Below are positions 1,089 to 33,952 of a stretch of 64,000 bases of DNA, in pieces (position 1 is the first letter of the stretch; every line of letters starts with the position of its first letter). The notes under the pieces are model-generated. The model was not told where the DNA came from. It saw only the letters and a program-made list of their open reading frames with translations, and ran no database searches. Position numbers and translations under genes: made by a program. Source of the DNA: Mytilus trossulus (taxonomy: Eukaryota); assembly GCF_036588685.1 (NCBI RefSeq), contig NC_086377.1, positions 9,796,001-9,860,000 on the forward strand, read 5' to 3'.

Positions 1089-1855
1089 ATGGCTCAGGCA
1101 GCTTTTAAAACGTGTGAGATATGTGTTAGTGCCTCTGGATCTCATTACTGCTTAGAGTGTGAACAGTGCTTTTGTGACAATTGTAAAGGCTTTCATAAAC
1201 GGCAGAGAGGGACAAAGCATCACCAGTTCCAGTCTTCCTCTGATGTTATACCGGAAGTTAAATCAAAATGTAAAGACCACAATGAAGACATAAGTTTTGT
1301 ATGTAATACCTGTAACGTAGCGGTATGTAGCAGTTGTGTGACTGGCAGTCACTTAGGGCATGCCTTTTCTAAACTTCTCGACAGCATATCACAGCTGAAG
1401 GAAACGAATACAACAGACCTGCGTAGAAAAGTACTACAGTCAACCCAAAACATGAAGCAGATAGAAGAGGGTCTGAAGGCATTTGATGTGAAGGTGGAAG
1501 GAATAGTTAAAGCTATTACAGAAGAAGGTACAAGGATAAAGACCATGGTTGATAAATGTATCTTAGAGAAGATTGCATCGGTCAAGGATCAATCCAGGAA
1601 GGAAAGGGACAAATTAACAAAGCTGTTGGAAGATACTCAAAGTAATTTGAAGGCAGGACGCGACTTAGACAAGAAAATACATGAACTAAACAAAACACGA
1701 AACGATGGAAAATTGTTGCAATCTTTACAGAAGCTAACAGCCGACATTGTAAAGCTGACGGTAACGCTTAAACCTGAATTTCCGAACGTACAGTATACTG
1801 TTAAGTCCGCAACAGATAACGACGTTAAACAGTTGTTTGGTAAATACATAATCAG
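1089..1855 (+). CDS. Copy 1, exon 1: RING-less TRIM-like protein (B-box1, B-box2, coiled coil)
   Basis: ORF 1089..1859 with CEIC..HYCLECEQCFCDNCKGFH..H (B-box type 1), CKDH..FVCNTCNVAVCSSC..H..H (B-box type 2) and a long charged helical region. Good start context (ACAACATGG). Ends at phase-2 donor ATCAG|GTAATT, conserved in all 4 paralogues. Confidence 0.92.
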
Positions 1856-3560
1856 GTAATTATACTAAAAGTAACTAAGCATTTTGTAGTCGTAATACAT
1901 GTTTTAATATAACCCATAGTATCCTAATGAGAAAAAAATGCAAAAACACAATAATGTTGTTTTTTTCTAATATCAAATCATGTCTGGATATGATATGACA
2001 GACGAAGGAGAGATAATTCATGAAATACATGTTTGTGTTCATTACAAATGTATTGTTTAATATTATGGATTCAAAATGTGATCCAGTAGATAAATACGGC
2101 AGTGTGCATTTTAATTTGTATTGATCTCGACAATACGTTAACAAATGTACAAATGTAAAAATGCAAAAATACTTGCTTTCAAACCAGAACAGATATATTT
2201 GTTTTTCTCGTTATTCAAATGTGTTATTCTAATTGCATGCATTTTATGTAATATTATAAAAGAAATAAAGACAAAAGAAGTATACCGCTTTACAATAGTC
2301 ATAATAAATCGATTAAACCACATGTAGAATAAATCTGAACAAAACTGAGGGAAACACACATTAACTACAAGTGGAAAGCAACAGAACAACATAAACACTA
2401 TTCTGCTACAAAAACAAACGCCAGAAATACAAAGAAAATGACTTTTTGTTAACAACTGTCATACTCCTGACACTTGACAGAACATTTTATGATAAAATAA
2501 ACATAAAAATTTCTGTTTTTCTTTTATCAGTGAAATGCCTACACAACACACCATGAACAGAGAAATAGAATTGCCATCACCCAAGAGGTAAGGAATATAT
2601 TTGTATATTAAACAGTTTTTAAACTACGCTTTTGACAATGTTAACTTGTCATCAAATGTTTGAGTGAATTACACATTATCTTCTTACATACCTCACCATT
2701 TGACGTGGCAACGATTCTGATTAAGTTTGCATTTTATCCTGCAATTGGGTGTTCTACTATACAGATACAGCCTGCTTTGCTGTACTTGCATACTATACAG
2801 ATATCGCTTTAAAGCTCCACCCACTGCCAAACTGAGTATCGTATGAACCTGCGTGACATCAGACTGTTTATTGCAGTTGCATTCCAATGAAGTATTAATT
2901 GTGAATTAACGATAACTTTATAAATACGTTCTGTTTGTTTTCAAACATTTCTTTAGAGCAACAAGAATCCCACCAATGTTTTGATAACATACACTCATGA
3001 ACATCAGTCTTTTCTACGATGACTTCTATTTCAAAACTTGTGTATGATTTTGTAACAAAAACAGCCATGTCAATTTCAGCATGCATGTTTAGTGAATGTT
3101 TCAAATTGGACAAAGTAGTGTGATTTGTTTTTACTGTTGAAATTAGTTGTTATGCGAAACTAGATAATTATTCACCTAGAACGATGTATAGGTGTTGATC
3201 ATTCGATATTCTTAATTTGCAAACACGTCGTCAACTGAATTTGTGATCACTGTATCGTATGACTACACGGATCTCAAGAGGGATTTCAATTCAAAAATAA
3301 ATGCAAAACATGTGTTTGTGTCTTTCAAAACAAAAATAATAAACAGAATCGTTTGCAGGATAAAGACAATAACTGTTTAGTGTCTTTAAATATCAGCTGT
3401 ACTCGATTCGAAGCAGGTGTAGTAGCTCGCGAAAAGCTCGCATACAACTTGTTTCCTAGCATCGTACAAATACAGCTTACATTTAAAGACACAGTTATTG
3501 TCTATATATATTGTGTACACCAGTTAACCGTTTATTTTTATTTTCGATAAATCCATTAAA

Positions 3561-4010
3561 AAGTCTCTCTGGTTTATGCCGATCCTCTTTTTCCTACTAC
3601 GTACGTTAAACCACACTGACTCAAGCACGATAGCATTTAAGTTAATAAATCTTCTTATGATATGGAAACGCATACTAGTAGCATACATTATTATCAATAT
3701 TGTTTAGATTTTGTTGCATTTAATTTTCGTAAATATACTGCTTGTTAAAATGTGCCTGCTTCTCTAGTTGAAATATTTAAAACCTTTCTATGCTTAAAGA
3801 GTGTCTCTATGGTTTATGTATCTCCTCTTGTATCAACTACGTACGTTAGAACACACTGGCTCGAGCACGATTGCATTTAAGTACATAAATATTCTTATGA
3901 TATGGAAACGCAAACTAGTAGCAACAATTATTTTCAATAGTGTTTAGATTTTGTTAAAATGTCCCTGCTTTTCTAGTTGAAATATTCAGAACCTCTTTAA
4001 ACTTATACAA
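3561..4010. repeat. Two tandem ~240-bp units in intron 1 (also two units at ~62541-63000, one at ~33070-33280)
   Basis: Repeated tctctggtttatg...ctagttgaaatatt. Confidence 0.8.
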
Positions 4011-4922
4011 TATAACCAAAATATAAAAGTTATTCATCACAATTATCTATTGAGGCACGTATAATCAAAAGACGCCAAACTGTTTTACAACAACATAACA
4101 CAGTCATACTGTTTTGTTAAGTGTAGTTTGTCTTTTTATAAATAGTTTTTGTATGCAATATCTTTCCTCATATGTCGAGGAGTTCAACCACTTCAGCATT
4201 CACATTCACAATCGACTGTTGATGAAAGAGTAAACGACTTCAGCAGGTACATTCACAGTCGACTGTAGATTAGGTAGTAAAAGAATCCAGGAGTCACTTT
4301 CATAATCGACTTTTGTTGACGGGGTATATGATTTTATCAGCCACATTCCCGAAATGCATCTGGAATTAGTACCATGAGTTTCGATTGTATATAGTATACT
4401 TAAGAACTATCAGTCATTACTAAATGGTTGGAGTACTATGTAAACTCTTATATTGTTTTGGTGATGTCATCCAATTTTGTTTAAAGGAACGACAAACATC
4501 AATACGACCATTCCAGCTAAATAAAAGTCGAAGTTAATTAAAATGTTTTGTCAAAAATTAGACACACTACGTAACAACAACCCCCACTTACAACAAATGG
4601 TGAATTGTGATACTCTTCGTGGGTAAACAGTTTCTGTTCTACGCGGAACCATAGGAAACTTCTGTGAATTTAAGCAATATATCTTCCCGGAAAAAGAAAT
4701 GTATCTCAGTCTGGGTGTGAGCTGATTTTTCGTCTTTTATATTAATATTACAATTAATTCGAGATTCATTAACTTGGTTTATGACTCTTGTATATATTTC
4801 AAATGATTTTTGATATTTTTGCACTGTTTATGTGTGTACCAGTTAGTAATAGCTTGTTGGATTTTAATATCATCTTGAAATAGTGTAACTTTTAAGTCAA
4901 TCAATAGTGTTGCTCATTGTAG

Positions 4923-4988
4923 TGATTACAAACAGGATGTGATACCAAAGGAGCAGGGAAAATGCCTGTATAGATGTGAAAAGTGTGG
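4923..4988 (+). CDS. Copy 1, exon 2 (66 nt, phase 2-2): (S)DYKQDVIPKEQGKCLYRCEKC(G)
   Basis: ctcattgtag|TGATTAC...TGTGG|gtaagt; in frame with exon 1; homologous exon at 33884-33952. Confidence 0.85.
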
Positions 4989-5176
4989 GTAAGTTCATTA
5001 TAATTGTTTTTATGGACATGACACACAGTTGTATATCTATATCATGTGGCGTATCAAATGTATAATTGCCAAGTGTCAATGAAGTGCATAATAACTTGTT
5101 TTTTTTCTCGAAAAATGCAACTGTTGTCATTTGTTATTGGCTTACGCCACACATATATTTGCACTTTTTAAAAAAT

Positions 5177-5260
5177 CAATAAGAAACATTGATGAACAAA
5201 TCAATACGAAACATTGATGAACAAATCAATACGAAACATTGATGAACAAACCAATAAGAG
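5177..5260. repeat. 25-bp tandem repeat x3
   Basis: caatacgaaacattgatgaacaaat repeated. Confidence 0.85.
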
Positions 5261-6858
5261 TGATAAAGAGCAGCATTGACTTGTAAATAATTTACACATA
5301 TGTATGCAGGTAATGAGCAACATATATTCGCCTGCGTCAGCAGTGATGTAAATGGATTTATAATAAAAAGACTTGACGACACTCATATGTAATCACTCAT
5401 AGTGAGCATTTGGTGGTTTGATACTAAATCATTCACGGGTATTGTGCATGATATGCATAATATGGAGAAATTCATTTTTTATCAGTTAAGTAGTGGTCTG
5501 GAGCTAGCATGCTTGTCAGTAACTGCTAAATTTAATAGTCTATGTTAATATATGAATCATTGCCATTTTGCATAGGTTTTTAAATTACCTTTTCTGACTT
5601 CAGACTCTTTTAAACTGAGTTAATCGCACGAGGTTTGGCTAGACATAAAACCAGATTATACAAACCAATTGCTCTAAAAATGTCCTGTTTCAAGTCAGGA
5701 ATATTGAAATTGTTTTCAAATAGTTCGGTTCTATGTATGTTGCATTGACCTTTTTTTTATTGCAGTTCAGTGTTTCTGTTGTTCATTTGTGACTTCTTAT
5801 AATTGGTGTGTTTCTCTCGATTTTAGGTTTGTAACCGGGATTTGTTTTCTCTCAAAATATTTATGACGTTGAACTACGGTATACTACTGTGGCTGTTATT
5901 GGTACTATCTGGATAGCTGTGTGTTTTTTCTGTCGACATTGAACAGGTGTTTGCACCTGTCCAAATTCAGGAGTCTCTGAGTCTTTGTTAGTCTTTTTCA
6001 ATTTTAATTTCAGTTAACTTATGTGTTTTGGAGTTTGGTATTACGTCAATAAAACTGAGTTAGTTCACATTTTTTGTTTAGAGGCCAGTTAAAGCCCGCG
6101 TCTAAGCGAAGGATTATCTCGCTGTGTTTAAGACCCATAGATTGCCTTCGATTTTTCTCTGCATTTTGTTCGGGATGTTGTCTCTTTGACATATTCATAT
6201 TTCCATTCTCAATTTTACTTGGAAATCAATCTTAGAGGGAAACATATATGATGTTTGGACAATTGTCGAAAGGTCTTAAAATAGAATACACATTGGTACA
6301 CTAATGCAGTTTTGTTTGTTTGAAATTCCAGAAGAAAATTGAATAGCTCAACCAAATTCCTCAATAATAAACGACACAGAATATTTTAAATTGAAAAGCA
6401 TCTAAAACTAAACGACATTTGCCCTTGTTGACGGTTTTGTTTCAGATATTTTAAACGTTAAAAAGGCATAAGGTAGATGACGTATAGCTCTTAATGTAGA
6501 AAATATTGATTAATTAAGATACTTTTTACATATGAATTAGATTTAAGTTACTCAGTTTTGCTGAGTCAAGTCAAAATATTTCTTTTAAGACATTAATTGT
6601 ATAATGCAATAAAGTTAATGCCGCAAATGTTATCATAATAATGTAATGCTCAAACATAACGATTTTAAATGGTTATCTCACAATACAATTTAACTAAACA
6701 TGTACATTGTAAAGGTAATAAAATGAAGTAAACTTAACAAGATTTATTAGAACTATTTGTATTGCTTTTGAAATGCTATCTGGATAAACGGCAACACATC
6801 TATCAGTATTTTTGTTTAGAATGTGTAACTGACACACTTGATCTGTTTCATCTTTCAG

Positions 6859-6879
6859 AACGAAAGAGAGATCTGATAT
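6859..6879 (+). CDS. Copy 1, micro-exon 3 (21 nt): (G)TKERSD
   Basis: tttcatctttcag|AACGAAAGAGAGATCTGATAT|gtaagt; same-length homologue with near-identical flanks at 34773-34793. Confidence 0.82.
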
Positions 6880-6899
6880 GTAAGTATGATCTACGTCTA

Positions 6900-7520
6900 C
6901 TTTAGACCGTTTTACAGTGCTGTACAACTTTGTACATTTTTTCACATTCGATCTTTTATATCTGGGCGTCACTGGTGAGTCTTGTGTGGACAAGGCGCGT
7001 TTTTGGCGTATTGAATTTTAAACCTGATGCTTTTTGTTATCTATTAATCATGTTTTTTCTTTGTCTAATGTGTTCTATTTATTTGTATTGTAGTCCTGTA
7101 ATATTTTGTTGTCATTTCGATGTTACATTTAACTTTGCCATTAAAGTGCGAGGTTTGGCATGCCAAAAAAACAGGTTCAACCTGTACCAAGTCAGGAAGA
7201 TGGCCATTGTTATAGTATTGTTCGTGTCTGTGTGTGTTGCATTTTAACGTTGAGTCGTTTGTGTTTTCTCTTATTTTTGAGATATTGAGATAAGACGTGG
7301 CACGGTACTTGTCTATCCCAAATTCATGTATTTGGTTTTCATGTTATATTTGTCATTCTCGTGGTGTTTTGTCCGATGATTGGTCCATTTTGTGTGTGTA
7401 TTGCGTTTCAGTGTTGTGTCGTTGTTCTCCTCTTATATTTAATGCGTTTCCCTCGGTTTTAGTTTGTTACCCCGATTTTGTTTTTTGTCCATGGATTTAT
7501 GAGTTTTGAACAGCGGTATA
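6900..7520 (-). mobile_element. Dispersed non-autonomous repeat, family B (AAATAAAGGCAACAGTAGTATACCGCTGTTC end); other copies at ~5620-5900(-), ~22795-22930, ~36547-37010, ~37995-38320, ~44367-44705
   Basis: Multi-copy similarity within the window in both orientations; class not determined. Confidence 0.7.
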
Positions 7521-9446
7521 TTCATAGAAATATTTTTTTTTAAGAAGAATTTATTCATCATTACATATAAAATTTTGAGAATTGTTGGGTTTTTAATTTT
7601 AGTATTTCGTATAGCTTGTAAGCATGTATAGACAGTATAGACAGTTGAAAAATCTAGATAATCGCTGAATTAAAAGAGGATTTGTTTTATTTTTATTATG
7701 TTCACTGAGATCAAATAATATTTTTGGTTTGGGAAGTTCCCATGGAGGACATTTCCAAGTTTTAACTTGAGCAACACATTTTAAATCAAAAGAAGCTAAA
7801 TGTGGTTTTAAACCTATACCTAACGGAGGAACTTTATTTTCATGTTTTGCAAATCTATCTTCATAAATCGGATTAAAAACACAGCTGTAGGCAGGATTAT
7901 CTAAATGTAATTGTTATTTGGATGGAGAGTTGTCTCATTGGCACGCACACCCCATCTTCCTATATCTATTTGAATTCGAGCGTCACTGATGATTCTTTTG
8001 TAGACGAAACGTGCGTCTGGCGTATATACTACATTTAGTCCTGGTATCTATGATGAGTTTATTTAATCAACTGAATATGTTTTAGGATTACCATGCTTAC
8101 GATTTATTCCACTCATACAATTGTATGTTTGATGTTTTTACTGAGTTTGATAGTGTTCATCTCCTTTATTTTCTTATTTCAACCAGGAAACTAATAACTT
8201 CTCTGCGGATTAAATATAGCACATACATAATTGCATACAATTTCTAAAGGTATGGCTTCCCTTAAATAAGTTATCGAACGTCATCAGTTACCGACCATGT
8301 AATTGCCAGTCGAGATCGGTAAACACTTTCAGTAGTGGACGTTTGAAATGTATAACTACATACAATAATGGATATGTTCTATTTGTCAGTACATTTCTTC
8401 TATTTTTTCAAAATTAAGTTACAATAAATTTTGATGCGAACCATACGACAGATGCTGAGTTTTCTTTGTATTTTTATCAGAAGTTTTGATAGGCCTTTTT
8501 TTTGTTACTGTGTTGTATGTTTTAGTTGGTTTTTTTATGATTTTCGTATGCCCATCGAATTTTGTTTAAAATATCTATTAAGAAAATAAGCAATTAACCT
8601 CTATTTATATTGGAATAGAAAAAAAAGGTCCCATTACAGTAATTGTGTCTCTTATTTTGCTCACACGTGCACATTGTTGTCAATTCAATGGAATTATATG
8701 CCACTTTCACAAGGTTGAGAAGTTAAGCTAGTTATAAACAAAGTTTTATCCATAATTTCCTACATCAGGAAATTCATGTACGAAAAGATTGGCGAGAGAT
8801 ACTAGACTGACAATCAAACTCATGGATAGAAAATAAACTGAGAATGCCACGGCTAGGAATATAAAAAACGACAAAGACAAACAGAAAAATAATAGAACAC
8901 AAGACATAACACAGAAAACTAAAGACCAAGCAACACCAACTACACCAACAACTTGGTAAAAACGTATATAATATGTTTGCATACTATGTAATTGACAAAA
9001 GTGTTTTATATCTAGCTCCTTATAATTAAATCTTTTCGGCTAGTCATAATCAATAACAAGAAACAATCATTGTTTTTAATATAAAGATAACCACACACTA
9101 GTCAATAAAAGCAATTATGTTTATGTATTCATTTTGTGAAGTGGTTTGTACACATACATACCTCGTTTTACAAATCAAATATTCCTGAAAAAAAAATCGT
9201 TCATAAAGGCCATTCTGCGACCGATACTATTCATTTCTATTTGTCCACTTCATTTAAACTTTGGTTAAAAGTTTTCCATATCATATAGGTATATCAAAGG
9301 TTGCTCGAGCAAAAGAAAGAGGGAAGATATAGAAGTAACATTCCTATGTATACAATAGGTTATCACACTCCTGTGTATATAACATGTAAATACATTCATA
9401 TGTATGCAAAAGGTAAATATTTCAGGATGTACGCCTCCTACTCAGA

Positions 9447-10160
9447 AATCCAACTATAAACACATCAGACATAACTGTATATGTCTAATCCAACTATGAA
9501 CACCTCAGGCATACCTTAAAATGTCTAATCCAACTATGAACACCTCAGGCATACCTTAAAATGTCTAATCCAACTATGAACACCTCAGGCATACCTTAAA
9601 ATGTATAATCCAACTATGAACACCTCAGGCATAACTTGAAATGTCTAATTCCAACTATTAACATCTCAGGCATAATTTTAAATGTCTAATTCAACTATGA
9701 ACATCTCAGACATACCTTAAAATATCTAATCCAACTATAAACACCTGAGGCATACCTTAAAATGTCTAATTCTAACTATGTACATCTCAGGCATAATTTA
9801 AAATGTCTAATTTCAACTATGAACACCTCTGTCATAACTTAAAATGGTTTATGCAACTATGAACACCTCAGGCATACCTTAAAATGTCTAATCCAACTAT
9901 AAACACCTCATGCATACCTTAAAATGTTTAATTCGAACTATGAACACCTCAGGCATAAATTAAAATGTCTTATTCAACTATGAATACCTCAGGCATAACT
10001 TTAAATGTCAACTATAAACACCTCAGGCATATCTATAAGTGTCTAATTCCAACTATGAACACCTCATACGTAACTTTAAATGTTACATAGAACTATAAAC
10101 CCCTCAGACATAACTTAAATGTCTCATTCAGCTATAACAACATCAGGCATTATTTTAAAT
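9447..10160. repeat. 40-bp minisatellite, about 18 units
   Basis: Unit aatccaactatgaacacctcaggcataccttaaaatgtct, head to tail. Confidence 0.93.
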
Positions 10161-10364
10161 CATCTCAAAGACTATAATAAAATATGATAAAACAGAATAT
10201 CACACATGATTAATGTCTTCACTATTCAATATTCTCACAGAACAAAAGGTAGTCTCAAAATGTTCTACTTTTACTGCACTACTTATTCAATTAATTCTAT
10301 TGTCATTTTTATAATTCAATGCTAAATGGTTTGTTATTGTATGATGATTTGTTTTATTTTTCAG

Positions 10365-10373
10365 GCGGTACTG
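10365..10373 (+). CDS. Copy 1, micro-exon 4 (9 nt, GCGGTACTG)
   Basis: gttttatttttcag|GCGGTACTG|gtaagt followed by the conserved ACAGATAAGT motif; frame-preserving. Confidence 0.72.
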
Positions 10374-11048
10374 GTAAGTCTCAAGTAGCAAACAGATAAG
10401 TATAGCTCCCAATTATATATGTAGTTTATTATATATAAGATATTTATACAAAGGTGTAAAGTGAAACAATAATTATGCCATTTATAAGATGTATGATAGA
10501 CTAACGTTATGTCTACGAAAGAGGCGGACGATACCAACGAGACGTTTAAACTCATTAGTCAAATGGAAAGTGATAATGCATTGACAAAAAACTTTTCAGA
10601 CATAAAGTCAATTATCAGTATACAAAATACCTTATGTTATTTTATGCGCTGTTTTCTTGATTAACGTTCATTGAAGATGCCTAAAGCAGAAATGTTTAAA
10701 TCATATCACGTATAATAACCCAAACTGTTGAAGTTATGTCCATAGAGAACGTGCATCAATATGATTATACCGACATAACGTCAGCTTTTTCGAGGATGAT
10801 TAAACCACGATTTCTTTACATATTTTAAATGTATAAAGTGACAAATTATTCAAAAAGCACATTATTTTGTATTATTGATGGCTTTACTTTTTTTAATAAT
10901 CTGGCATAAAAAAACTGTTATCTTAAAATGTTCTCCTTTCTCGATACTACTTATTCAATTATTTCCATTTAATATGGGTGTAATTCATTGCTGAATTGTA
11001 TGTTGTATGCTGGATTTTATAATTATTCATTTGATTCTTTTTTTACAG

Positions 11049-11051
11049 CTC
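11049..11051 (+). CDS. Copy 1, micro-exon 5 (3 nt, CTC)
   Basis: ttctttttttacag|CTC|gtaagtgtcaagtagcaaacagataagt. Confidence 0.65.
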
Positions 11052-11722
11052 GTAAGTGTCAAGTAGCAAACAGATAAGTATAGCGTACAATTATATATGC
11101 AATTCACAATATAAGGTTGTCGATGCATTGATTGTAGTAGAATATATAAATAAAACAATAAACCTATCATTGACATAATATAATTATCTCAGACGCGCAT
11201 GCAGTCAATAAAAGGGTCGGCAAAAACCAATGCGACATTCAAACTCACTAGTCAAATATTAACTGACAAAGACATTACAAAAGCCTAAAATGACAAACAA
11301 CAGTATTCGAAGGAAAGAAAAGCGGGTGATTTCATGTGCAGTTTTCTAGATGTTACTGCATAGGAGACGTTAACAGCAGAGATGGTTAAATCCAATGACG
11401 TATAATAACCAATTACCAACACATTTAAAGAACTATATAAACATAGAGAACAAAACTAAAAATTGTTAAACCCAAGGTCAGCTTTCGTCGATGGTGTTTA
11501 AATCTAAGTTACTTTATACATTTATAAAGCGACACTTCAAAATCATATCATTATCTCATTTCAATGTATGAATTATGACCATACCAAATTATTAATCTGA
11601 TAGAACAAGCTGTCATCCCAACATGTTCTGCAATCCCTTTACTAATTATGACATTAATTCCATTCTAATTGTGATAACTCATTGCTAAATGGTGTTCTCT
11701 ATTTAAGATTACTTTTTTTCAG

Positions 11723-11725
11723 CCC
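11723..11725 (+). CDS. Copy 1, micro-exon 6 (3 nt, CCC)
   Basis: actttttttcag|CCC|gtaagtgtctagtaacaaacagataagt. Confidence 0.65.
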
Positions 11726-12954
11726 GTAAGTGTCTAGTAACAAACAGATAAGTATAGCATACACTCATCTATGCAATGTATTAAATAATACTCATATATG
11801 TATATACACAGGTGTTTTCAGAGTAGTATTATTAAACAATAAACATACATTTTAAAGAGAAAGGTAGTGGAGAAGATGTTTTGAAATTGGGTGGTATTTG
11901 TGTTTTTTTTCAAATAACCAATTTCTGAAGAAAAAAACATGTGTATTCTTCAATGACTATTGTCAGCTATTTACAGAAACCTGCATACATAAGCCAACGC
12001 TTCGAGTTTCAAAAACTATGTCTTGAATATTACAATCATGTCATACCATTTCACAGTTTGATTATACTATTCAAGACATAGTTTTAAAAGCTCAAAGCGT
12101 GTGCTTATACATTCAGGCTGGTGGAAACCTAAATGTGGTGGTTAAGTTTACAACATTGAAAGTTTTCCTAACGTCACACTATTGCGGGGTTTCATCCAGT
12201 TCATTAGTTTACTCTCAATTAATTGATTTTTCCCAAAAAGAATAGTGTGCTATGTTAAATGCATTTACTCCGGACTATGTAGCAACTACTCATCAATAGG
12301 TTATCGTTACCCGAACAAGTAAAAGCAATTGTGTATATATGTTCAACATCATATGAGTAAACGTATACTCGTACGGTTCGGCCATACGCGTACAGTCGGA
12401 CCGTATGAGTATTCGCGTATAGACCAGTACGAGCTGACCATTCATGTTATTAGATCATATGGTTTAAATTTAAACATATCACAATCATATCGACACACTA
12501 ATAATTTCCCAATTGAAAAAAATGATAATTGCAATTTAGGTTGTTATTTATCTTAAAATCTAACATAACTCAATGAAGAAAAAAAAATATTACACATATT
12601 CGTGTTGAATGAAGTACTTCCATTGTTTTATTGTTATATGATGATAAAAATGTCGGCAGTTTTATGTATTGTGCATTTTCATTATAATTTTGACTTAAAA
12701 AAAACACACACAAACACACTCAAGACATTGCATACGTCCGTAGCGCTTTGTTTTAATAACACTGACGTGTTATTGATAAGGCGGAATAATAAGACATACG
12801 TTGTTATGTTTTTACTACAGTGATTTGAATATAATTTACCAGTGGGCATAATAAGAAACAAGACACATACACCAAAATGGATGCAACCAACGTGTTATTT
12901 TATCCTCAAAAGAGAAAACAATACGGGTTGAAATTCCATTTACATTTTATTAAG

Positions 12955-13290
12955 AAGATATAGATATATGAAGATGTGGTGTGAGTGCCAATGAGACAAC
13001 TCTCCATCCAAATAATAATTTAAAAATAAGTTAACCAGTATAGGTCAATGTACGGCCATCAACACGAAGCCTTGGCTCACACCGAACAACAAGCTATAAA
13101 GGGTCCCAAAATTACTAGTGTAAAACCATTCAAACGGGAAAACCAACGGTCTAATCTATATAAAAAACGAGAAACGAGAAACACGTATAAATTACATAAA
13201 CAAACGACAACTACTGTACATGAGATTCCTGGCTTAGGACAGGTGCAAACATTTGCAGCGGGATTAAACGTTTTAATGGATCCAAAACTT
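12955..13290 (+). mobile_element. Dispersed repeat, family A (AAGATGTGG..TGCCAATGAGACAACT end); other copies at ~25245-25580, ~45025-45340, ~50475-50860(-), fragments at ~7911, ~20300, ~39750, ~49775, ~63920
   Basis: Multi-copy similarity within the window; class not determined. Confidence 0.75.
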
Positions 13291-13535
13291 CTCTCTTTTT
13301 CTGAAACAATAGATGTTCATCATTTTTTTTTTTTATATTTTTGCTTCGTTTGAATAGCTATAACATTAAGTAAACTAAGTTTCATTAAGAAAAACATTAG
13401 CAATTTAAAGCAATATGCTAAACTTTATGTAATCAAAATTGATAAACTGATGTTTTGTGAAGACTTGTTTTATGTATCAGGATTTTCCTAGTTATTCCTT
13501 AGATTTTCATTTTTTTTTCTTTTTTTCTTTTTCAG

Positions 13536-13541
13536 TCCTCC
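13536..13541 (+). CDS. Copy 1, micro-exon 7 (6 nt, TCCTCC)
   Basis: long polypyrimidine tract + cag|TCCTCC|gtaagtgttatgtaccgaacagataagt; positional homologue of the 6-nt exon at 38575-38580. Confidence 0.72.
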
Positions 13542-15486
13542 GTAAGTGTTATGTACCGAACAGATAAGTATAAGGTTATAATGTTACAACATTATTAAAA
13601 TTAATGGACAACAGATAGTGAATGTTGTGTGTCGTGCTTTAAATAATGGGAAAATATTAAACTAGTTGTAAACAATTATTATTATGTAAAGGTTACATAA
13701 CCCATTCCTGAATAATAAGCAATGCGATATTTTGACTTTCGTCTTTAAAGAATAACATCATTTGGAAATGATTACACATATAGCACAAGTACAAGGTTTT
13801 GGGCATGCATGACGTCTGCACAACTTATATTCCATCCACATCAGACTAGTCATTTAAATTTTAAATATTAAATAGTTTGTAAAACTAGGGTCTTTATATT
13901 TACCTTTTGCACACTCTGTACTTGACTATAATTAACCAATTCTAATGCAGATAAGACGTGTTTCGGGTTTACTAAGCTGTTATACTAGTGTCGTGTATGA
14001 CTTATTACATCCACTTGTTTGATGCAAAAGTTTGTTATTATTTTTCTCCATTTCTACCTTTTATGATACCTTTATTTTAATATATAATCATCAATCACAG
14101 CGATTGAATATGCCTTCACACACAAAATGAGGGATCACATCGATAATTAAGCTTCTAAATAAATAAGAAGTTAGGTAGTCTTTCAAAGACTATCATCCAA
14201 ATCACCTTTGTCAAACTATTTAAACTATTGTATGATATTGTCTATTTTTTTTAAATAATACATGACAATGTCCCTAGTTTAATTCGCTACTTAAATGTCC
14301 ATGTATGATATATAACTGTCTTTGCGTACACCATGTTCGTCCATTACATGATGTAATACGAGAATAATATCATTGACAATTTCAACATATCAATTGTCTT
14401 AACTTTTTATCGGAAAGTGTCACTTACCCAACCATAAGTATTAATGATAGCTTTGAGCATTTATTGTTATATGAAAGATATGACAAAAGGCAGTTTGTTT
14501 AGAAAAAATATCAAGATGTGAATGTGTATTTGTTTGTTGGAATATTCAACTTGATAATTAATTTTAACATACGAAACAATGTTACTGGGAATTAATAAAA
14601 GTACTGGAAATCAAATATACGTGGATAAAATAACCAGATTCATTACGCCTAAGCTAAAAATTATTTAACAAGAAAAAAGAAATAAAAAAGAAATATTGTC
14701 AATGAGACAGCTTTCAATGACAAACGTTTTATCATAAACAGAGGTTTATAAATTGACCATACGGCTTTAAGTTATGGGCACTATAATACCGTCTTGTAAG
14801 ATAAACATATCAAATATGTAAAGTTTTGTAAAAGTGGAAACTATCTCTGATAAGTTCGATAGGTAGGTCCGAGCTATTTGTTTTAGCTAATATTAAGTAC
14901 TGCAGATAAAAGTTACGATCAATATGTTTCTTTTATTACTTGGCAGAACATATTATTAATTAGTCATACACAGACAGAGATCGTTAATCCTAAATATATT
15001 AGTATAAAAACTTGAACGAATATTGGCTTATTTTGATTTGTCAAGTTTAATTATAACAACAAAATTATTATTAAAATTTGAATACATTGAAAGCGCTTTT
15101 ATATATGACTGTTGTGCAATGGAATAATCGAAGGCAAACATAATCCAAACTATTTACTGATTTAAACCAAAACTAAGTGCAAGATCATACAACTTAACCA
15201 ACAAGACAAATGATTTGTAAAGTATATTAAACTTATTTATTTTTTTTAAAACTAAAAACACTGAAGGACATTTCGAAAGCTAAACATTTACTAAGATCTT
15301 ATATTAAGCAAAACATCAACCACACCGCTAACGAATTAGGTTTCAAAAAGGTAAATGCATTGCATTCAAATAGCATGACTAACCATTTATAACAATTCCA
15401 ATACACGTGTATTTTTGAAGAGCAAGTACTAGGATTATGATGCATTAATTAAATAAAAACAATTATTATTTACTTTATTTTTGCAG

Positions 15487-15514
15487 ACGATGGTTCCAAA
15501 TCAAGGAAACTTAA
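15487..15514 (+). CDS. Copy 1, alternative or degenerate terminal exon A (phase 2: RWFQIKET*)
   Basis: tttattttgcag acceptor; homologous to terminal exons at 23256 and 40790 but 1 nt shorter before the shared ATG; AATAAA near 15620. Confidence 0.4.
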
Positions 15515-16989
15515 TTACAGACACAGAATTTGTACAACAACCGTCTTCAAATGAAACTATAATAGAAAACTATCCGAATAGTGTTTTTGTTTTAATTATA
15601 TTATATAATTACACAAACAATAAATGCTTTGTAAATGATGTACTACAATGTTGTTAAAACCACAAACGAATAAGGGCACGCGTGTAACATCACAAAAATT
15701 ATCCATACACTCTCATTGCGAATACATATATTAGTTTGAATTACAAAAAAAAAATGCAGATTGAATTTCATATCTTATAACATTTCAAAAGTAAAACTAT
15801 TATTCACAAAATAACAAATATTTTATGAATGTCATTTATGTTATATAATTGTTTGCTTATATTATGAAATGTAATGTTTCTGCAATATGAAATACACTTT
15901 CAAATTGGTTTTACTGAATGATTTACCTGAAACAAACTGATCTAGTATCTATTTGACTACGACGATTTTTCAGCCTCTCCTCAATTCGATTGTATGTCTC
16001 ATGTTTTTGTGGTTTCTCTGGAGAACATGGTTTTACACTTGCCCTTCAGATCGGTAGTTTTGAGTTGTAGCATTTAGACAGTCTTTGCATCTATGTTTGG
16101 TCATACACTGTGTCCGCATAGTTTCAACGAGTGTTGTACGAAGATAATTTTCGCTAAATATTTCTTGTCGTTTATTAAAGGGATCGTTTTTATATTTGGT
16201 TTGTTGTTTTTTGTGCACTGTTGGTTTCCTTATGCTCTTTTCCTTTTTATCCTTGACGTTGAACGTTTCCTTTTTTATATTTTTGACCTTATATTTTATA
16301 TATGCTTTTGTCATTTTTCTTTGTTTGTTATTATTTTTTTACGAATGTGTTAATCGATATGATATGTAATGCCTTACAGTAGGGTGGTTTCAGAATATTT
16401 GATAAAGATACTAGTTAACATATTTTGTTTGATTGTTAAATTTTGACATATTCTTATATTGAAAGATTTCCAAATAAAAAAATGTCTATGTTATTAATAT
16501 TTTTGATTTTGAAATAAAAGATATGACTTACACAAACAACCAAATTATGTTGATGAACGTATATAATGTCGATACCAGTATGTTTTACTTCTACATGTAT
16601 ATAAAGTCACTGGACGATAACCCTTTCCTGCACAACTGTTACTTTTTTTTCACAAAACTGTAATGCAATTTGCGCAAATACATTAACTTACAGAACATTA
16701 GATAGTATCAAGACAATGTATTCAACATGTATCTGAACAATTCAATCAACGCACTTCTTGATTTTTATTGATGCACACGTCCAAGCAAAGTTAGTGAGCG
16801 ATTATATAAGTTGAAGTAGATTAGTTTATCGGAATGCAGCATTTTGTTAGTTGAATAAACTAATATAGTCCACACAATCTAAGTGAAATTTGGCCCAACC
16901 TTATAAAAATTGAAACAGAAACAAATTGGTTTTATATGAAAGCTATACATGTCCTCTATCAAATATTAAAAGTCCTAAGAAATCGTAGT

Positions 16990-17600
16990 TGCCCAAAACA
17001 TGTTTTTTGGGGGCAAAAAAACAAGGCAATATTAACCAAAAATCGCTGAAAACTGAATTTGTTGTATATAATGAAATTATGAATAAAATTTTCAACTGAC
17101 ATGATTTTAAAATAGTTTAAGCTTCTTAATACATGCCATATCAGCGATTTTAAAAGGCATAAGACCAAGTTAAGCTATTTTTTTTGGTAAAAATGGGTGA
17201 TTTTGTCAAATAATCGCTGAAAACTGGATTTGTAGTATATAATGAAATTTAAAATAAAGTCTTTAAATGACATGATTTCAAATAGTTTCATCTTCTTAAA
17301 TCATGCAAAATTAGCGATTTAAAAGGCATAAGACCAAGTCAAGCCTGTTTTTGGGACAAAATGGTGATTTTGTAAAAAAAATCGCTGAAAACTGGATTTG
17401 TTGTATATAATAAGATTAAGGACAACATCTTCAAATGATATGATTTCAAATAGTCATAACTTTTTAAATCTTGCCATATCAGCGAATTAAAAGGCATTGG
17501 ACCCAAGTCAAGTCATTTATATGGTAAAAATTTGTGTTTTGTCAAAAAGTCGTTGAAAATCGGTATTTTCTAGTTGAAATGAAATTCTGAAACATATTTT
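16990..17600. repeat. ~170-bp tandem repeat (3-4 units), probably subterminal repeats of the adjacent transposon
   Basis: Repeated aatcgctgaaaactg...agcgattttaaaaggcataagaccaagt. Confidence 0.75.
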
Positions 17601-17749
17601 CACAGCATAAAATATCAATATGTAAACACGCATTTCCTTAAAGTCAAAAGGCTGTTCAATAGTCTTTGTATAAATAATGGTTTTCAAATAAAGAAATATC
17701 ATTCTTGATCGACTCGTTGAAATTTCATATTTACGTTGAATCTAAGTCA

Positions 17750-19150
17750 CTCTGTGTAAGACTTGATGAATTTGTGAAGTGTATACCTCGACATTCAATA
17801 CAGCCTATTTAACCCTCAATACCATGTTTCCTGCAAGTGCATCGCTTGTTATCACAATTCTGCTGACAATTACAGCGAATAACTTTCAATAGTGTGTCTG
17901 GTGCAGGTGTTAATGTTGATCGAATTAGAAGCAGTTTATTTCCTGATGTACACCAACCCCAATCAATGCCAGAATACAGCTGTGTCAATAAGCATGTGTG
18001 CTCTTAATGCACACGCCACAGCCGTCTTGCAGTTGAGTATATGTGAGACAGCATTTGGGGAGTAGATAAGTTCTTGAATCCCAGAGTTACTCATAATATG
18101 ACCAATGCTACCCAAAAAGATCATTTCTGTATGAAAACCTCATACTAAAGGCTAATGACTTCAGTTGACTGCTTGGTTCCTCATTCTGCACAATGGTCAG
18201 TGCGTTCAAATGCAGCGGTTGGTCGCCTGTTAATACAGGTATTATATTCTACCGAGTTGCTTGATTGCAAACGAATGTCAATGTTGAGTAGATACAGGAC
18301 AAATCTGTTGCAATTATGTCTATCATTGGGAGAAATGATTCTGTAAATTTCCCTGGATATTCTTTTTTATGTACCATCTGCATCGTTCCGGACCATCCTG
18401 GTCGAGGTCTAGACGCTTGCATAACTGCCTGTCAAATTGATGCATCTTCAGTTTTTAATCTTTTTCAAGAAAAAATGTTTTCATATCTAGGACATATTAC
18501 ACATTCTGATCTATCGATGCTATGTCTAAGGGGAAATAGGTAGTACTCCTTCAAAGTTGCTACTGATCGAATGTCACTTTCAATCAGCTTTGCAGCTGCT
18601 AAAATTAAAACTTGTTTCTCATCCTCAGAATTTCTATGCCTGGTCGATGGTAAAAGTTTTCTAGAATGGTTGTCGCATAATCTCTAATTGTAACAATACT
18701 ACTTTTTCCAGATATATCAGTAATAAGAATATCATCTTTAAAAAAGTGTTATCTGCAAATAAACAGAACTGTAGGCTTGTTCTTCACATGTATGGTTCAT
18801 CTTATCAACGAGTTACTAATTGTGATTTGTTCATCACCACGAATTTTAGGTATTCAACAATGTTTAAGAAAAAATACTCATTGGCCTACCCCTACTGCTG
18901 TTTTTTTTTTTTTTTTGGGGGGGGGGCAGGTAAAAACGCTAAAGTAATCTTTTTGTTTTTCCTGAAATTCATGCTGCATGTTTGATGGTACAGTGCATCT
19001 GCTGCATGCAGATCACTTATTGATTGAAGTCTTCCTTGGATTTTTGAAGCCTATTTATTATCACATTCATTGCATACTTGAATGATTATAGTCTGAAAGT
19101 CATCTGCTCGTACAGGATAAACTTCACTACCTTTCTTTTTATTTTTTGTT
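17750..19150 (-). mobile_element. Degenerate DNA-transposon ORF remnant with C-terminal tesmin/TCR-like CXC domain
   Basis: Minus-strand translation gives DLHAADALYHQTCSMNFR, LILAAAKLIESDIRS and PAPDTLLKVIRCNCQQNCDNKRCTCRKHG, with many stops; superfamily not assigned. Confidence 0.65.
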
Positions 19151-20970
19151 GCTTGAAAGTAGTGGTCAAGGAAAAAAAACTGTTAATAACGGATCTTTCC
19201 TAGGGCTTAATACAACATTAAAGTTAAAATTGGCTAGTTGAATAGGTTAATGAAAACAAAATTCTTCGACAACACTAGATAGTCAAGCAGACATCACACA
19301 TTGTCATGTTTTTTTATTAATGATTTTTTTTTATTGAATTGCATTTTCAGTGGTTTTTAATGTATCCTTTTTCTTATGACGTGTAAGTGTATGTGTTGTG
19401 AACAGTATTCTATTTGATTCAGATATGTTTGTTCCATTTTCTTTTGTTTCTTAACATCCCATCAATAGATACGTTTCGACCGTCCGGTTATTTTGTATGG
19501 GTTGTAATTTTCTATCATTTTAACGGTCATTTTGAAAAGACCACACTATAAGTTATTCCGATAAATTGATTATTTTATAAAATTATGAATTAATTAAAGT
19601 TACCTAAACAATCATCATCAGCATTTTATAGTGATTTAAATCAATATAATTCTCTAGAGTAAACCTTGAAAAATACAGTCGTGAAGTTGAACAATGCTGA
19701 AAAATGAGAAAAACAAATATTACTTTTATTATTGATTTTTTTATTAGAATTTTATCTTTTTTTCTTCAAATTCATTAAGTTTATACTTACATTTCTTATA
19801 AATAGTAAAAAAACAGTATAAATATTCGCTTTTTTGCTTTGTTTCTTTTTGTGATGAATAATGCTCCATTCAAATGGTACAGTTCTGTTTTTTTTTATAG
19901 ATAAACATTAAATACTAAATTAATGTCCAGATTGGCTTTCCATAGATTTACTTTTTCGTTACAAGGCGTCTGTTACAAAAATGATTTTCATTTAACCACG
20001 GACGGTCATTGGCGGAGAACTGGTTCAGCCTAATATTATTTACAATGTATCAATACAATTAATCAACTTTTTAACTGTAAACAATACTGTAATTCGCAAG
20101 ACAGCGTTTTTAAACGTGAATTTGATGACGTCATTTATCTTTTTTTGGGGGGCAAATATGCGCAAAATTCACTACCCAATTCTCATATTTATATAGTAAC
20201 TTACCTTTTAATAAATATTCTTTGTCATTCTGTTTTCACTAAATTCGTCGGAACAGCGCTCAGAATCAACCAAAATAAAATGTTCATATGTGGCGATTAT
20301 TTGGTATGTTGGGGTCCTTTATAGCTTTTTGTTCGGTGTGAGCCAATGCTCCTTGTTGAAGGCCGTGACTTGATCTATAATTATTTACTTCCATAAATTG
20401 ATCTTTTGATGAATAGTTGTCTCATTGGGACTGATACCACACATTCCTATACCTTTATTTGCACCGCTACTTCTGTATACAGGCATGTATACCATGACAT
20501 TTTTTCTAAAATATCTATACAGTTATCAAATCTTATTTTATCATATAGTTTATGTTAATAGTGTATAGTGTTCTTATACACAATCATAGTACTGCTTGGT
20601 TCTAAAATAATACAACCTATTTTAAGGAACGAACGTTATATATTATATGAGAATTGATATGACATTTTGATGTAGCAACATTATTTCTTACATTATTCAA
20701 AACATTATGTTATATAGTAAATCTTGCATTTTGTGTTTCCTTTTGGCTCTTCTTATGGTATAATATTTTAATTCACAATTGTCGATTCGTACTTATTCAT
20801 CTTTGAAAAATATGTATGGATTAATAAGGTCAGACTGAATTTATACATAAGGTAAACAGATCGCTTCATGAAAATATATAATGTAAATTTAATTTGAAAC
20901 TCGCCTAGACAACTTCGATAGGTAATTCAGAGCGACTCATCCTAAATAATATGATATTTTCTCATTTTAG

Positions 20971-20985
20971 CTGTTCATGTGGAAG
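20971..20985 (+). CDS. Copy 1, micro-exon 8 (15 nt): CSCG knuckle
   Basis: ttttctcattttag|CTGTTCATGTGGAAG|gtaagtactgc; homologues at 39531 and 40337 keep C-x-C-G, with silent changes at phase-2 wobble positions. Confidence 0.8.
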
Positions 20986-21428
20986 GTAAGTACTGCAAAT
21001 AAATCTTTGATCCATATATTTAAACATCATCATATTTTTTCTTCTTCTATTGCTTGACAGTACATATTATGAATTAGTCATGCAAAGATGTAGAGGTGGT
21101 AATTTTTAAAGAACTAATATGTTTTATAAATGATTATCACTTTTGTATGTGTTTGCTACTTTCGATCAACAATGATTATGTAATCGTTATTACAACATCG
21201 GTCGTAACGAATATGCAGAGAAAAGCAGTTGTGTTTGCTTCCTTTAGATATAACGAATGACAGAACTTGTATTCTACAAGTAGGTCTCTTAGAGGACACT
21301 ATTTTGTCTATTTCAGTCTTATGTCTGTCTCTGTAACAACTCGCTTATATTTAAAACATTGGTACGTTATCATATTGCATGCATACTTGTGGAACACAAA
21401 CTACTTCAAAACTTACATTAGATATATA

Positions 21429-22784
21429 TGTTACAGGCAATTTCTAAATTTATGCATTTTGTAAAATGACTGAAATGTTTAGGCATTTTCTAAAATGCCT
21501 GCATGATTTAGGCATTTTACAAATTGACTATTTTTTTCAGGCATTTTATAAAATGCCTGAAAAAATTGTAAGGCATTTTACAAAATGCCTAAAAGACTAA
21601 AACTGAATGGAATGTACTCAAAATTTAACGACTGGAAATATCAAAGAGAAGATTTTATTCTATCATTAAATATAGCATGCAATTTAAACAGTTACAGTTT
21701 TATAATTGTTATTAAATCATTTACATTAACACTGAATATGAAAATTATTTTTGCTACATGTAATGATTGGATGACAGCAACTGTTACACATTTTTTCTGT
21801 CTTTTTGCAAAGACAACGTTTAGTGTTACAGCTTGTCTTACCACTAGCACTACGGCCACATTTTGTGTAACCCTGACCATCGCACAAAGAAACTTTACTG
21901 ACAGCTTTACTGAAGGATATTTCAATATCATAATTTACGGATTGAATAGCAATAAAGTTACTGTCAGACCGTTGAAACTGATTCCTTATGTAAAGTCCAC
22001 ATAGTATTCCATCTTAAATTCCATGTTGATAACCATGCTCTTCCTTTCCGGTAACAACATCCATAAGGTTACACAGGTCTCCTTTCCCTCCATTCACATG
22101 GGGAATTGTTACTAATACATTCACTCCAATATATACCTCTGTCAAAACTCTTTCCGATGGATTTCTAACCTGACAGCTTGTTTTGTCATTGAGTCTGATG
22201 CATGCCTTCTTTCATCATGTTTGATAACCTCTTTATTTGAACACAGAGGACAAGTAATAGTATCATACATTGAATGGCGCTTGCTTTTCAAGTGGCAAAT
22301 ATTTGATGCATATTCAATAGGCCTATAAGGCAACTTAATGGTAACAGAAGTCGTTAACTCAATCTTCATATGTCATTATGTCTTTTTTTTAACTTGACCA
22401 ATTTTTAAAATATTCTTTGAGTGTATCATACTTTTATTTTCAATATTTTGTAAGATGAGCAATTCAGGCTCCTAGAAGCCTACAGATTTTCTTATTAACG
22501 CTTGTTACATTTTTAAAGAATAATCTTAAATTTATAAGTCAACCCTTTTTGTAGCTTTACAATACAGTTTTTATCATCTTTTTCATGTATTTCATATTTA
22601 CATAATTTGCCTGAAACAAACCAGGCAATTTGTAAAATTTTCATTAAAAATTTCAGGCATTTTACAAAATGACTAGGTTTTTTTAGGCATTTTATAAAAT
22701 GTCTGTCAACTTCAGGCATTTTAGAAAATGCCTAAAAATTCAGTCATTTTACAAAATGCCTAAATTTAGAAAATGCCTGTAACA
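21429..22784 (-). mobile_element. Ginger2-like (KRBA2/SCAND3-type integrase) internally deleted DNA transposon
   Basis: Long TIRs TGTTACAGGCA...TGCCTGTAACA, TATA on both sides; minus-strand remnant GDLCNLMDVV..GILCGLYIRNQF..DGQGYTKC..CNTKRCLCKK..CNSCCH. Confidence 0.8.
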
Positions 22785-23255
22785 TATACATTAAATAAAG
22801 GCAACAGTAGTATCTGCTGTTTGATAGTCATAAATTGATTTAACTTAAACAAATCTGGATCACAAACAAAAACCCAGAGAAACTCAGAACTATAATATGT
22901 ATAAGAGTAAAGCAACGGAACAATATAAACAACTTAAAACTGTCGTGTACTGTTAAACAATAGTAAAATTGAGAATGGAAATGTGCAGTGTGCCAAATAA
23001 ACAACAACCCGACCATAGAACCCGACCATAGTCTATAGTTCAACTAGTACAAGGGACAAAGGCAGTTCTTATTGAAGTTTGAATACAGTGAACGCTTTTA
23101 CTTGTATGACTCAATAATTGTTCAATAAGATAATTGAAAGCGAACACAATCCCAAGTGCCTGCTGATTTAAGTCGTGCATAGATGCTTAGTTAAACAAAT
23201 AAACGAACAAAAGTTTCTAATGATTTCAAAATAACAATTATATTTATTTCTTCAG

Positions 23256-23277
23256 TTTGATGAATAGAGTCCAGTAA
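23256..23277 (+). CDS. Copy 1, terminal coding exon B: (S)LMNRVQ*
   Basis: tttatttcttcag|TTTGATG...CAGTAA; the CAG TAA stop and following AGAGACA are conserved in the copy-2 terminal exon. Full spliced CDS is 912 nt (303 aa). Confidence 0.75.
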
Positions 23278-31334: not shown

Positions 31335-32101
31335 ATGGCTCAGGCAGCTTCTTAAACGTGTGATATTTGTGTAAATGCTTTTAGATCTCATTACTGCCTA
31401 GAATGTGAACAGTACTTTTGTGAAAATTGTAAAGGCTTTCATAAACGGCAGAGAGGGACAAAGCACCACAAGTTTCAGTCTTCCTCTGATGTTATACCGG
31501 AAGGGAAATCAAAATGTAAAGACCACAATGAAGACGTAAGTTTTGTATGTAATACCTGTAACGTAGCGGTATGTAGCAGTTGTGTGACTGGCAGTCACTT
31601 AGGGCATGCCTTTTCTAAACTTCTCGGCAGCATATCACAGCTAAAGGAGACGAATACAACAGACCTGCGTAGTAAGGTACATGAAGCAACCCAAAACATG
31701 AAGCAGATAGCAGAAGTTCTGACGGCATTTGATGGGAAGGTGGAAGGAATAGTCAAAGCTATTACAGAAGAAGGTACAAAGATAAAGACCATGGTTGATA
31801 AATGTATCTTAGAGAAGTTTGCATCGGTCAAGGATCAATCCAGGAAGGAAAGGGACAAATTAACCAAGCTATTGGAAGATACTCAAAGGGATTTGAAGGC
31901 AGGACGCGAATTAGACAAGAAAATACATGAACTCAACAAGACACGAAACGATGGAAAATTGTTGCAGTCTTTACAGAAGCTTACAGACGACATCGGAAAG
32001 CTGACGGTAAAGCCTATACCTGAATTTCCGAACGTACAGTATACTGCTAAGTCCGCAACAGATACCGATGTTGAACAGCTGTTTGGTTAATACATAATCA
32101 G
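31335..32101 (+). pseudogene. Copy 2, exon 1 of TRIM-like paralogue with two nonsense codons
   Basis: Colinear with copy 1 exon 1 (767 nt, no frameshift) but TAA at codon 7 (31353-31355) and at 32088-32090; donor ATCAG|GTACTT. Confidence 0.88.
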
Positions 32102-33883: not shown

Positions 33884-33952
33884 TGATTACAAACAGGATG
33901 TGACACCACCAAAAGAGCAAGGGAGACACCTGTTGAAATGTGACGAGTGTGG
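33884..33952 (+). CDS. Copy 2, exon 2 (69 nt; NAGNAG acceptor allows a 33881 start): DYKQDVTPPKEQGRHLLKCDEC(G)
   Basis: cattgcagtag|TGATTAC...TGTGG|gtaagt; homologue of 4923-4988; expression uncertain because exon 1 is disrupted. Confidence 0.75.

Follow-up and report, generated by a model that had tools for sequence, protein, structure and literature searches.

Can exons as short as 3 nt be strung together to encode a defined part of a protein, and do the members of a gene family differ in exactly that part? This question is raised by a stretch of 64,000 nt of Mytilus trossulus DNA (C5:9,796,001-9,860,000; called the window in the following, with positions counted from its first letter), in which a gene for a B-box/coiled-coil protein, copy 1, starts at position 1089. 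The original prediction for this locus, made from the letters of the sequence, held that the C-terminal tail of copy 1 is assembled from a chain of micro-exons and diversified by their combinatorial use. Our analysis makes it likely that copy 1 is intact and that a loop in its tail is built from duplicated cassettes with exons of 9, 3, 3 and 6 nt, which vary from paralogue to paralogue.

Exon chain of copy 1

The window is AT-rich animal DNA in which the first exon of a B-box/coiled-coil gene occurs four times in tandem, starting at 1089, ~31335, 51391 and 60748; these members are referred to as copies 1 to 4. In homology searches, the proteins closest to these exons were Mytilus models of 256-402 aa named 'TRIM71-like', and contig C5, on which the window lies, is also the location of the genes for the M. 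trossulus RefSeq proteins P0003-P0007 and P0016-P0019 (P0007 is XP_063436120.1). Searches of the genome with the first exons gave at least 120 matches, located on C5 and, in the case of the more distant ones, on C11 and C14. Judged by these matches, the four copies are tandem members of a RING-less B-box/coiled-coil family of more than 100 genes in M. trossulus. The B-box of copy 1 was recognised by Pfam as PF00643 with an E value of 2e-13, next to a weak TRIM_CC match; in the window copies and homologues taken together, PF00643 was found in two stretches at E 2e-13 to 7e-15, followed by the coiled coil. No RING was detected by Pfam in the four window copies and six homologues, where solely zf-B_box, ANCHR-like_BBOX and TRIM_CC matched. 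The N-terminus of copy 1 goes directly into B-box 1 (MAQAAFKTCEIC...), and no secretion signal is evident by eye. As in TRIM/RBCC proteins, B-box 1, B-box 2 and coiled coil stand in TRIM order, in keeping with the RefSeq name; unlike these proteins, the family is devoid of a RING and of an NHL, SPRY or filamin C-terminal domain and has a tail of ~35 aa with four cysteines. The TRIM-like scaffold proposed at the outset thus holds for the B-boxes and the coiled coil that follows them but, with no RING, the protein is TRIM-like only.

The coding part of exon 1 of copy 1 (1089..1855, 767 nt, on the + strand like all features described below) encodes the two B-boxes and the coiled coil, is open over 256 codons, in which no B-box cysteine or histidine is missing, and ends in phase 2 at the donor AG|GTAATT. 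It is followed by a phase-2 exon of 57 nt (2531-2587; cag|T...AG|gtaagg) encoding (S)EMPTQHTMNREIELPSPK, which was identified by tblastn with the tails of homologues and is kept in P0003, P0018 and others. The next exon, of 66 nt (4923..4988), encodes DYKQDVIPKEQGKCLYRCEKC(G) with the first cysteine knuckle, CxxCG, and the one after it, of 21 nt (6859..6879), encodes TKERSD(M) and is homologous to the KEERSD exons of P0003 and P0018. Then come the four smallest exons: 9 nt (GCGGTACTG, 10365..10373; cag|..|gtaagt), 3 nt (CTC, 11049..11051), 3 nt (CCC, 11723..11725) and 6 nt (TCCTCC, 13536..13541). The second cysteine knuckle, (C)CSCG(S), is encoded by an exon of 15 nt (20971..20985), whose homologue with conserved flanks is present in copy 2 and in the P0003 and P0018 genes, and the last coding segment of 22 nt (23256..23277), preceded by the acceptor tttcttcag, encodes (S)LMNRVQ and the stop codon, with the 3' untranslated region beyond.

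Every internal exon is preceded by AG and followed by GTAA, and the 9-, 3-, 3- and 6-nt exons are framed by a long pyrimidine tract with CAG and by GTAAGT. The exons of 57, 66, 21, 9, 3, 3, 6 and 15 nt are all in phase 2-2 and multiples of 3, and thus form a run of symmetric micro-exons. Joined by their coordinates, the ten pieces of copy 1 give an open frame of 322 codons that ends in ..CLYRCEKCG-TKERSDM-RYCSPPP-CSCGS-LMNRVQ*. The exons of 767, 66, 21, 9, 3, 3, 6 and 15 nt and the 22-nt coding end were all found where the original prediction had placed them, and its stop-free reading of the tail in phase 2 was reproduced; its list was incomplete, since the 57-nt exon had been overlooked. In a scan of the whole window for a pyrimidine tract with YAG, 0-70 nt and GTAAGT, ten sites were obtained, all of them on the + strand. 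This strand asymmetry and the homologous donor flank of ~30 nt described below place the micro-exons of copy 1 beyond chance, and copy 1 is a structurally intact member of the family. Since all donors of copy 1 read GTAA in phase 2, a donor left unspliced leads to a stop one codon further on. The database models of the family form a ladder of 256, 275, 297 and ~306 aa, ending in ..IIR, ..PSPKR, ..CG and ..KEERSDx, because a missed splice at a phase-2 GTAA donor stops translation at the next codon; the cassette chains thus account for this ladder of truncated models.

The introns of copy 1 also contain repeats, namely a 40-nt tandem repeat of ~17.6 copies at 9447-10150, just 5' of the 9-nt exon, and 29-nt repeats at 21446-21594 and 22645-22764.

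Cassettes and their intronic element

The four smallest exons of copy 1 share a donor flank of ~30 nt, gtaagtgtcaagtagcaaacagataagtatag, and are also similar upstream (alignment A1; blastn). By this alignment, the 9-, 3-, 3- and 6-nt exons are tandem duplicates of a single cassette consisting of an exon plus its intronic surroundings. The conserved flank, gtaagt..caagta..aacagataagtat, lies at 10374..10405, 11052-11083, 11726-11757 and 13542-13573, and AACAGATAAGTAT occurs without mismatch at 10391, 11069, 11743, 13559 and 37296 of the window. Within the flank, ~22 nt after each donor, stands the U1-like sequence CAGATAAGTAT. The perfect complement of the 5' end of U1 small nuclear RNA is CAGGTAAGTAT. 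CAGATAAGTAT agrees with it at 10 of 11 positions, with A in place of the catalytic G, and is thus a near-perfect U1 site, though a dead one.

Loss of cassettes is visible in copy 1 as well. At 14877..14981 lies a dead duplicate of the cassette of the 15-nt exon, in which the acceptor is kept, the exon is degraded and the GT of the donor is lost; 14894-14981 matches the flank of the 15-nt exon of copy 2 in blastn. The tail region of copy 1 has a very recent duplicate elsewhere on the contig, since a cassette stretch 98% identical to its CTC/CCC cassettes is located 1.6 Mb upstream (C5:8168925-8169054; L002).

Micro-exon chains in RefSeq models of sister genes

We located sister genes of copy 1 in the genome, listed their downstream micro-exons by splice signal alone and then translated them in phase 2. 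For the P0018 gene, the resulting chain of 66, 21, 3 (ATG), 6, 3 (CTG), 3 (CTG), 6 and 15 nt encodes SDYKQ...CDKCGKEERTDKWGFCWYRCSCG, an exact substring of the RefSeq protein P0018, with the chain translation ending in ..GKEERTDKWGFCWYRCSCG. The P0003 gene has a chain of 66, 21, 3, 3, 3, 3, 6, 6 and 15 nt, in which four consecutive 3-nt exons are included; its translation, ...CDKCGMEERSDLLRRWELECCSCG, ends in ..GMEERSDLLRRWELECCSCG and is an exact substring of P0003, while the last exon of this gene encodes GLMDRVQ* and matches the C-terminus of the protein. In the P0016 gene, exons of 3, 3, 3, 3, 6, 3, 6 and 15 nt yield VLALGPLFSMFMWR exactly when read in frame 0, the RefSeq model being frame-shifted with respect to the family. 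P0007 (locus L030) is partly consistent with its gene, the first two 3-nt exons being CGA and CTT with a CGT unit skipped. The proposal that a chain of symmetric micro-exons encodes the tail is thus borne out by the sister chains, two of which are exact matches to P0003 and P0018 and a third, in a shifted frame, to P0016. We take the RefSeq models to be transcript-based, since an ab initio predictor would have no reason to chain eight micro-exons and to skip one class of them. By these matches, the micro-exon chain appears to be a real architecture that is already implicit in the RefSeq models of sister genes, and the claim that gene finders miss it entirely was too strong. In P0016, P0061 and P0106, the 15-nt exon is read in frame 0 as LFMWR and not as CSCG; these frame-shifted tails reflect either aberrant splicing or micro-exons misplaced in the annotation.

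The decoded chains also separate units that are included from units that are skipped. Cassettes with the exon CGT were omitted from all decoded chains, despite a consensus CAG and GTAAGT and a frame that would stay open upon their inclusion. The ATAAGT-type motif of the flank was kept in all 20 included units of these chains, while none of the five skipped CGT units carries it and AATGTA, AAAGTA or a similar sequence stands in its place; CGT units differ from included units elsewhere too. In copy 1, all four small cassettes carry the motif of the included class, and there is no CGT unit.

Cassette census across the family

A query of 131 nt covering a cassette gave at least 214 candidate matches in the genome. 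Forty of these at least 214 matches were scored; all of the scored ones are located in the region of C5 from 8.1 to 11.9 Mb, nearly all on the + strand. Among the genomic stretches examined, 117 units with the flank motif were identified. About 93 of these are intact, with exons of 3 nt (81 units), 6 nt (~8 units) or 9 nt (4 units), and one further unit has 5 nt; in 22 of the 117, the cassette is dead, having lost its acceptor or donor. The exon bases are the least conserved of the whole unit (0.83, 0.27 and 0.42 bits, as compared to 1.0-1.9 bits at flank positions +7 to +14). Exon length is thus held at multiples of 3 while the exon sequence drifts and the adjoining T-runs vary in length. Compact paralogues with introns of only 0.2-0.9 kb still keep their cassettes.

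Tail protein and loop variation

Across paralogues, the tail consists of the conserved segments CxxCG, KEERSD and CSCGG and a variable stretch in between. The decoded or annotated loops have 2-11 residues and include RYCSPPP, LRRWELEC, WGFCWYR, RWGICGYR, DLDFFGYHGYR and (L)YR, among others; loop diversity is clearly germline and lies between paralogues. A homology search with the tail only recovered eight proteins, and the ESM Atlas gave a single hit of 0.75 in an unnamed cluster. AlphaFold2 was run on P0003 with 41 family sequences. The B-boxes and a long helix were predicted with confidence (predicted local distance difference test, pLDDT, above 90 for helix 101-205), followed by a disordered linker at 266-291, which corresponds to the 57-nt exon plus the first part of the 66-nt exon. 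In the tail, short strands were predicted at 294-298, 304-307 and 323-326 with pLDDT values of 60-73, the micro-exon loop being the weakest part. The predicted fold of the P0003 tail is compatible with a small ribbon bearing a variable loop.

The ratio of nonsynonymous to synonymous changes (pN/pS) was 0.38-1.19 in the 57-, 66- and 21-nt exons, as compared to 0.30-0.38 in exon 1, in a comparison of four paralogues. Selection on the tail exons is relaxed and, given that they comprise 45 codons, not clearly positive. In the distant pairs of these four paralogues, synonymous divergence was lower in the tail exons (0.08-0.21) than in exon 1 (0.15-0.44), although numbers are small; this may reflect gene conversion or separate histories of heads and tails.

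Proposed mechanism and alternative explanations

We propose the following explanation. The 3' part of copy 1 would encode a disordered linker and then a four-cysteine tail (CxxCG ... CSCG), which probably is a metal binder. A loop of ~7 residues just upstream of the second knuckle would be supplied by the 9-, 3-, 3- and 6-nt exons, each of which sits in its own intron-flanked cassette. Consensus splice sites and the conserved intronic element would keep splicing constant and leave the 3-9 exonic bases free to vary, while whole cassettes may be gained, lost or killed; as a consequence of both, loops would differ in length and sequence between paralogues. Since an exon of 3 nt cannot be exon-defined, intron removal probably proceeds stepwise, in a manner similar to that at recursive splice sites. 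In this process, CAGATAAGTAT may recruit U1 and thereby help the real donor, which has no usable exon context.

Several points weigh against this explanation, in particular with regard to the use of copy 1. Reads of three raw RNA-seq runs (tissues unstated; ~12 million reads sampled from each) and one contig set were placed on 18201-24200, a stretch of 6,000 nt. Depth in the three runs was 0 on 20971-20985 and on 23201-24200, and the sole contig over the last exon of copy 1 also spans the intron and is thus unspliced DNA. In a search of sequencing runs with 23256-24100, none of the matching runs was recorded as RNA, and the exon-1-only form of 256 aa, the only form looked up, was absent from the protein collection. 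Since the chain spans 14 kb, no stretch of 6 kb could anchor reads on both sides, and the zero coverage means a lack of support for the expression of copy 1 rather than its refutation. Two residue changes of copy 1, the SPPP loop and CSCGS in place of CSCGG, could mean decay. Furthermore, the units counted in the census share descent and are not independent of one another, and the transcript basis of the RefSeq models is a presumption. Finally, no FmdB, desulforedoxin or other family was assigned to the tail by Pfam at E values up to 10; what was originally described as a ribbon-type tail with a variable loop between two knuckles is matched by the variable stretch between CxxCG and CSCGG and by the three AlphaFold2 strands, but not by a Pfam ribbon family.

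Matches of the run search with shares near 0.5 proved to be DNA from a relative. The RNA-seq reads cover only two short intronic repeat fragments, at 20309-20366 and 22989-23020, heavily and continue from there into unrelated sequence; these fragments probably belong to a transposable element that is expressed and located elsewhere.

The lack of reads over the 3' exons, the missing 256-aa form and the odd residues would also be accounted for if copy 1 were silent or decaying, with cassettes that are intact-looking relics and a 322-aa protein that is not made. In favour of this are also the high number of dead cassettes (22 of 117) and the fact that copy 2, next to copy 1, is a pseudogene. We consider it possible, if doubtful, for copy 1, as its first exon is open with a complete set of B-box cysteines and histidines, its ten splice junctions and its reading frame are all intact, its four small cassettes retain the motif of the included class, and the RNA data come from just three runs of unstated tissue origin. 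It is unlikely that the loop is instead diversified at the transcript level, in the manner of Schistosoma micro-exon genes (MEGs), by combinatorial skipping of six internal symmetric exons with up to 64 isoforms per gene. With exons in phase 2-2 and multiples of 3, any subset would indeed stay in frame; there are paralogue models devoid of the 57-nt exon (P0108), the 66-nt exon (P0021, P0106), both (P0019) or the 21-nt exon (P0007, P0016), and the CGT cassettes are left out although they have consensus sites and are frame-neutral. However, no two isoforms of one gene differing in micro-exon content were seen, the number of 64 is arithmetic, the skipped units all belong to a single degenerate class, which has no flank motif and no member in copy 1, the 3' exons of copy 1 gave zero reads in the three runs, and the observed diversity lies between paralogues.

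We think it improbable that the cassettes are merely stepping stones for a recursive-like removal of the 14-kb intron, with the encoded residues being a tolerated by-product and not a selected loop. The layout of a pyrimidine tract with CAG beside GTAAGT is that of recursive sites (bioRxiv 10.1101/006163), the exon bases are barely conserved and one cassette of copy 2 has no exonic base at all. These features contrast with a multiple-of-3 length in ~93 of 94 intact units in spite of variable flanking T-runs, with the position of the encoded residues between two conserved cysteine knuckles and with the retention of cassettes in paralogues with introns of 0.2-0.9 kb, which argues against intron length as the driver. 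Hardly any weight can be given to chance or an annotation artefact, i.e. intronic repeats with AG..GT forced into gene models. Pieces of 3 nt could be assembled into almost any peptide, and the cassettes are repeats, but the strand asymmetry of ten to none, the exact reproduction of three RefSeq peptides by an independent scan for splice signals and the consistent omission of CGT units, for which there is no ab initio reason, speak against it. A narrower possibility, that the 9/3/3/6-nt pieces are an artefact replacing one 21-nt exon, was ruled out by the splice-site cassettes and the sister chains matching RefSeq.

Returning to the duplicated cassettes as the source of loop variation, a more far-reaching version of this explanation can be formulated, which we regard as speculative and rather unlikely as a whole. 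In this version, consensus splice sites plus the catalytically dead U1 anchor would constitute a dedicated system of mussels for the splicing of 3-nt exons, by means of which a large and possibly immune-related B-box family evolves the loop of a metal-binding tail as one-codon cassettes are added, killed or edited, and regulated inclusion, e.g. of the CGT class, would add combinatorial diversity.

Relation to known systems

The MEGs of Schistosoma are the closest of the known systems, and the mussel family resembles them in its arrays of very short, mostly symmetric exons, its long introns, the difficulty of annotation and the link to protein variation (PMC10526429). MEG products carry a signal peptide and are secreted; they are encoded almost wholly by micro-exons, most often of 15 bp and, according to the main text, of at least 6 bp, and their variation by alternative splicing has been shown (PMC10526429). 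In the mussel family, in contrast, the protein is intracellular and of the B-box/coiled-coil type, with the effect confined to a loop; most units have 3 nt, a conserved intronic element accompanies them, and the observed variation lies between paralogues. Single 3-nt micro-exons adding one in-frame residue are on record for cytohesin-1, homothorax, MAP4K5 and RPS24 (PMC6314551, PMC7392893, PMC8632122, PMC12207440). These are isolated and conserved singletons (in RPS24, one 3-bp exon beside exons of 18 and 22 bp), whereas the 3-nt exons of the mussel family occur in up to four in succession per gene, by cassette duplication, across more than 100 paralogues. Recursive sites or ratchet points of Drosophila likewise have a pyrimidine tract with CAG abutting GTAAGT within a long intron (bioRxiv 10.1101/006163; PMC5126111), but they leave 0 nt in the mRNA, while the mussel units hold 3, 6 or 9 translated nt. 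Plant micro-exon clusters are similar in that adjacent micro-exons of at most 15 nt are missed by annotation; they are parts of domains and are ancient, conserved and single-copy, as opposed to the duplicated and hypervariable mussel cassettes (PMC8831610).

In our literature search, neither micro-exons of Mytilus or other bivalves nor runs of consecutive 3-nt exons were the subject of any paper found. The suspicion that the system had not been described is therefore correct with regard to papers, while RefSeq already carries such models, so that the sequences are public albeit undescribed. Exons of 3 nt are otherwise known as rare singletons; here, there are hundreds of them, up to four in direct succession, and each is accompanied by the same intronic element. 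The naturally skipped cassettes lacking this element offer a comparative and minigene system for the spliceability of ultra-short exons. The family shows, moreover, how a protein loop can become hypervariable in the germline, namely by duplication of one-codon cassettes within a massively expanded bivalve gene family.

Other members in the window

Copy 2 was expected to have a homologous but different tail, which it does, with exons of 69, 21, 6, 15 and 15 nt; its first exon (31335..32102) contains two in-frame stops and copy 2 is a pseudogene in this assembly. The remaining exons of copy 2 are those of 57 nt (32812-32868), 69 nt (33884-33952), 21 nt (34773-34793), 6 nt (GTATAG, 38575-38580) and 15 nt (39531-39545), and a second one of 15 nt encoding CVCGG (40337-40351). 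In a cassette near 37279, the exon is collapsed to 0 nt; this unit reads tttttcaGTAAGT, where a single G serves both sites and there is thus no working acceptor-donor pair. The second 15-nt exon of copy 2 has its counterpart in the P0018 gene (C5:9573283-9580175; L053-L054), which possesses a second tail module ~15 kb downstream of the first. This second module consists of a 21-nt KEESTD exon, the 6-nt exons CCCATT and CGGAAC and a 15-nt CVCGG exon, and is joined to the first module in the RefSeq model of 402 aa.

Copies 3 and 4 (51391-54231 and 60748-62352) have the first exon and the 57-nt exon, and neither the 66-nt exon nor later tail exons are present before the next gene. In M. californianus, the RefSeq isoforms X1-X10 share an identical tail and differ in the first exons joined to it (P0103, P0104, P0116). 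Together, these observations hint at an arrangement of variable first exons with a shared tail, or at read-through models.

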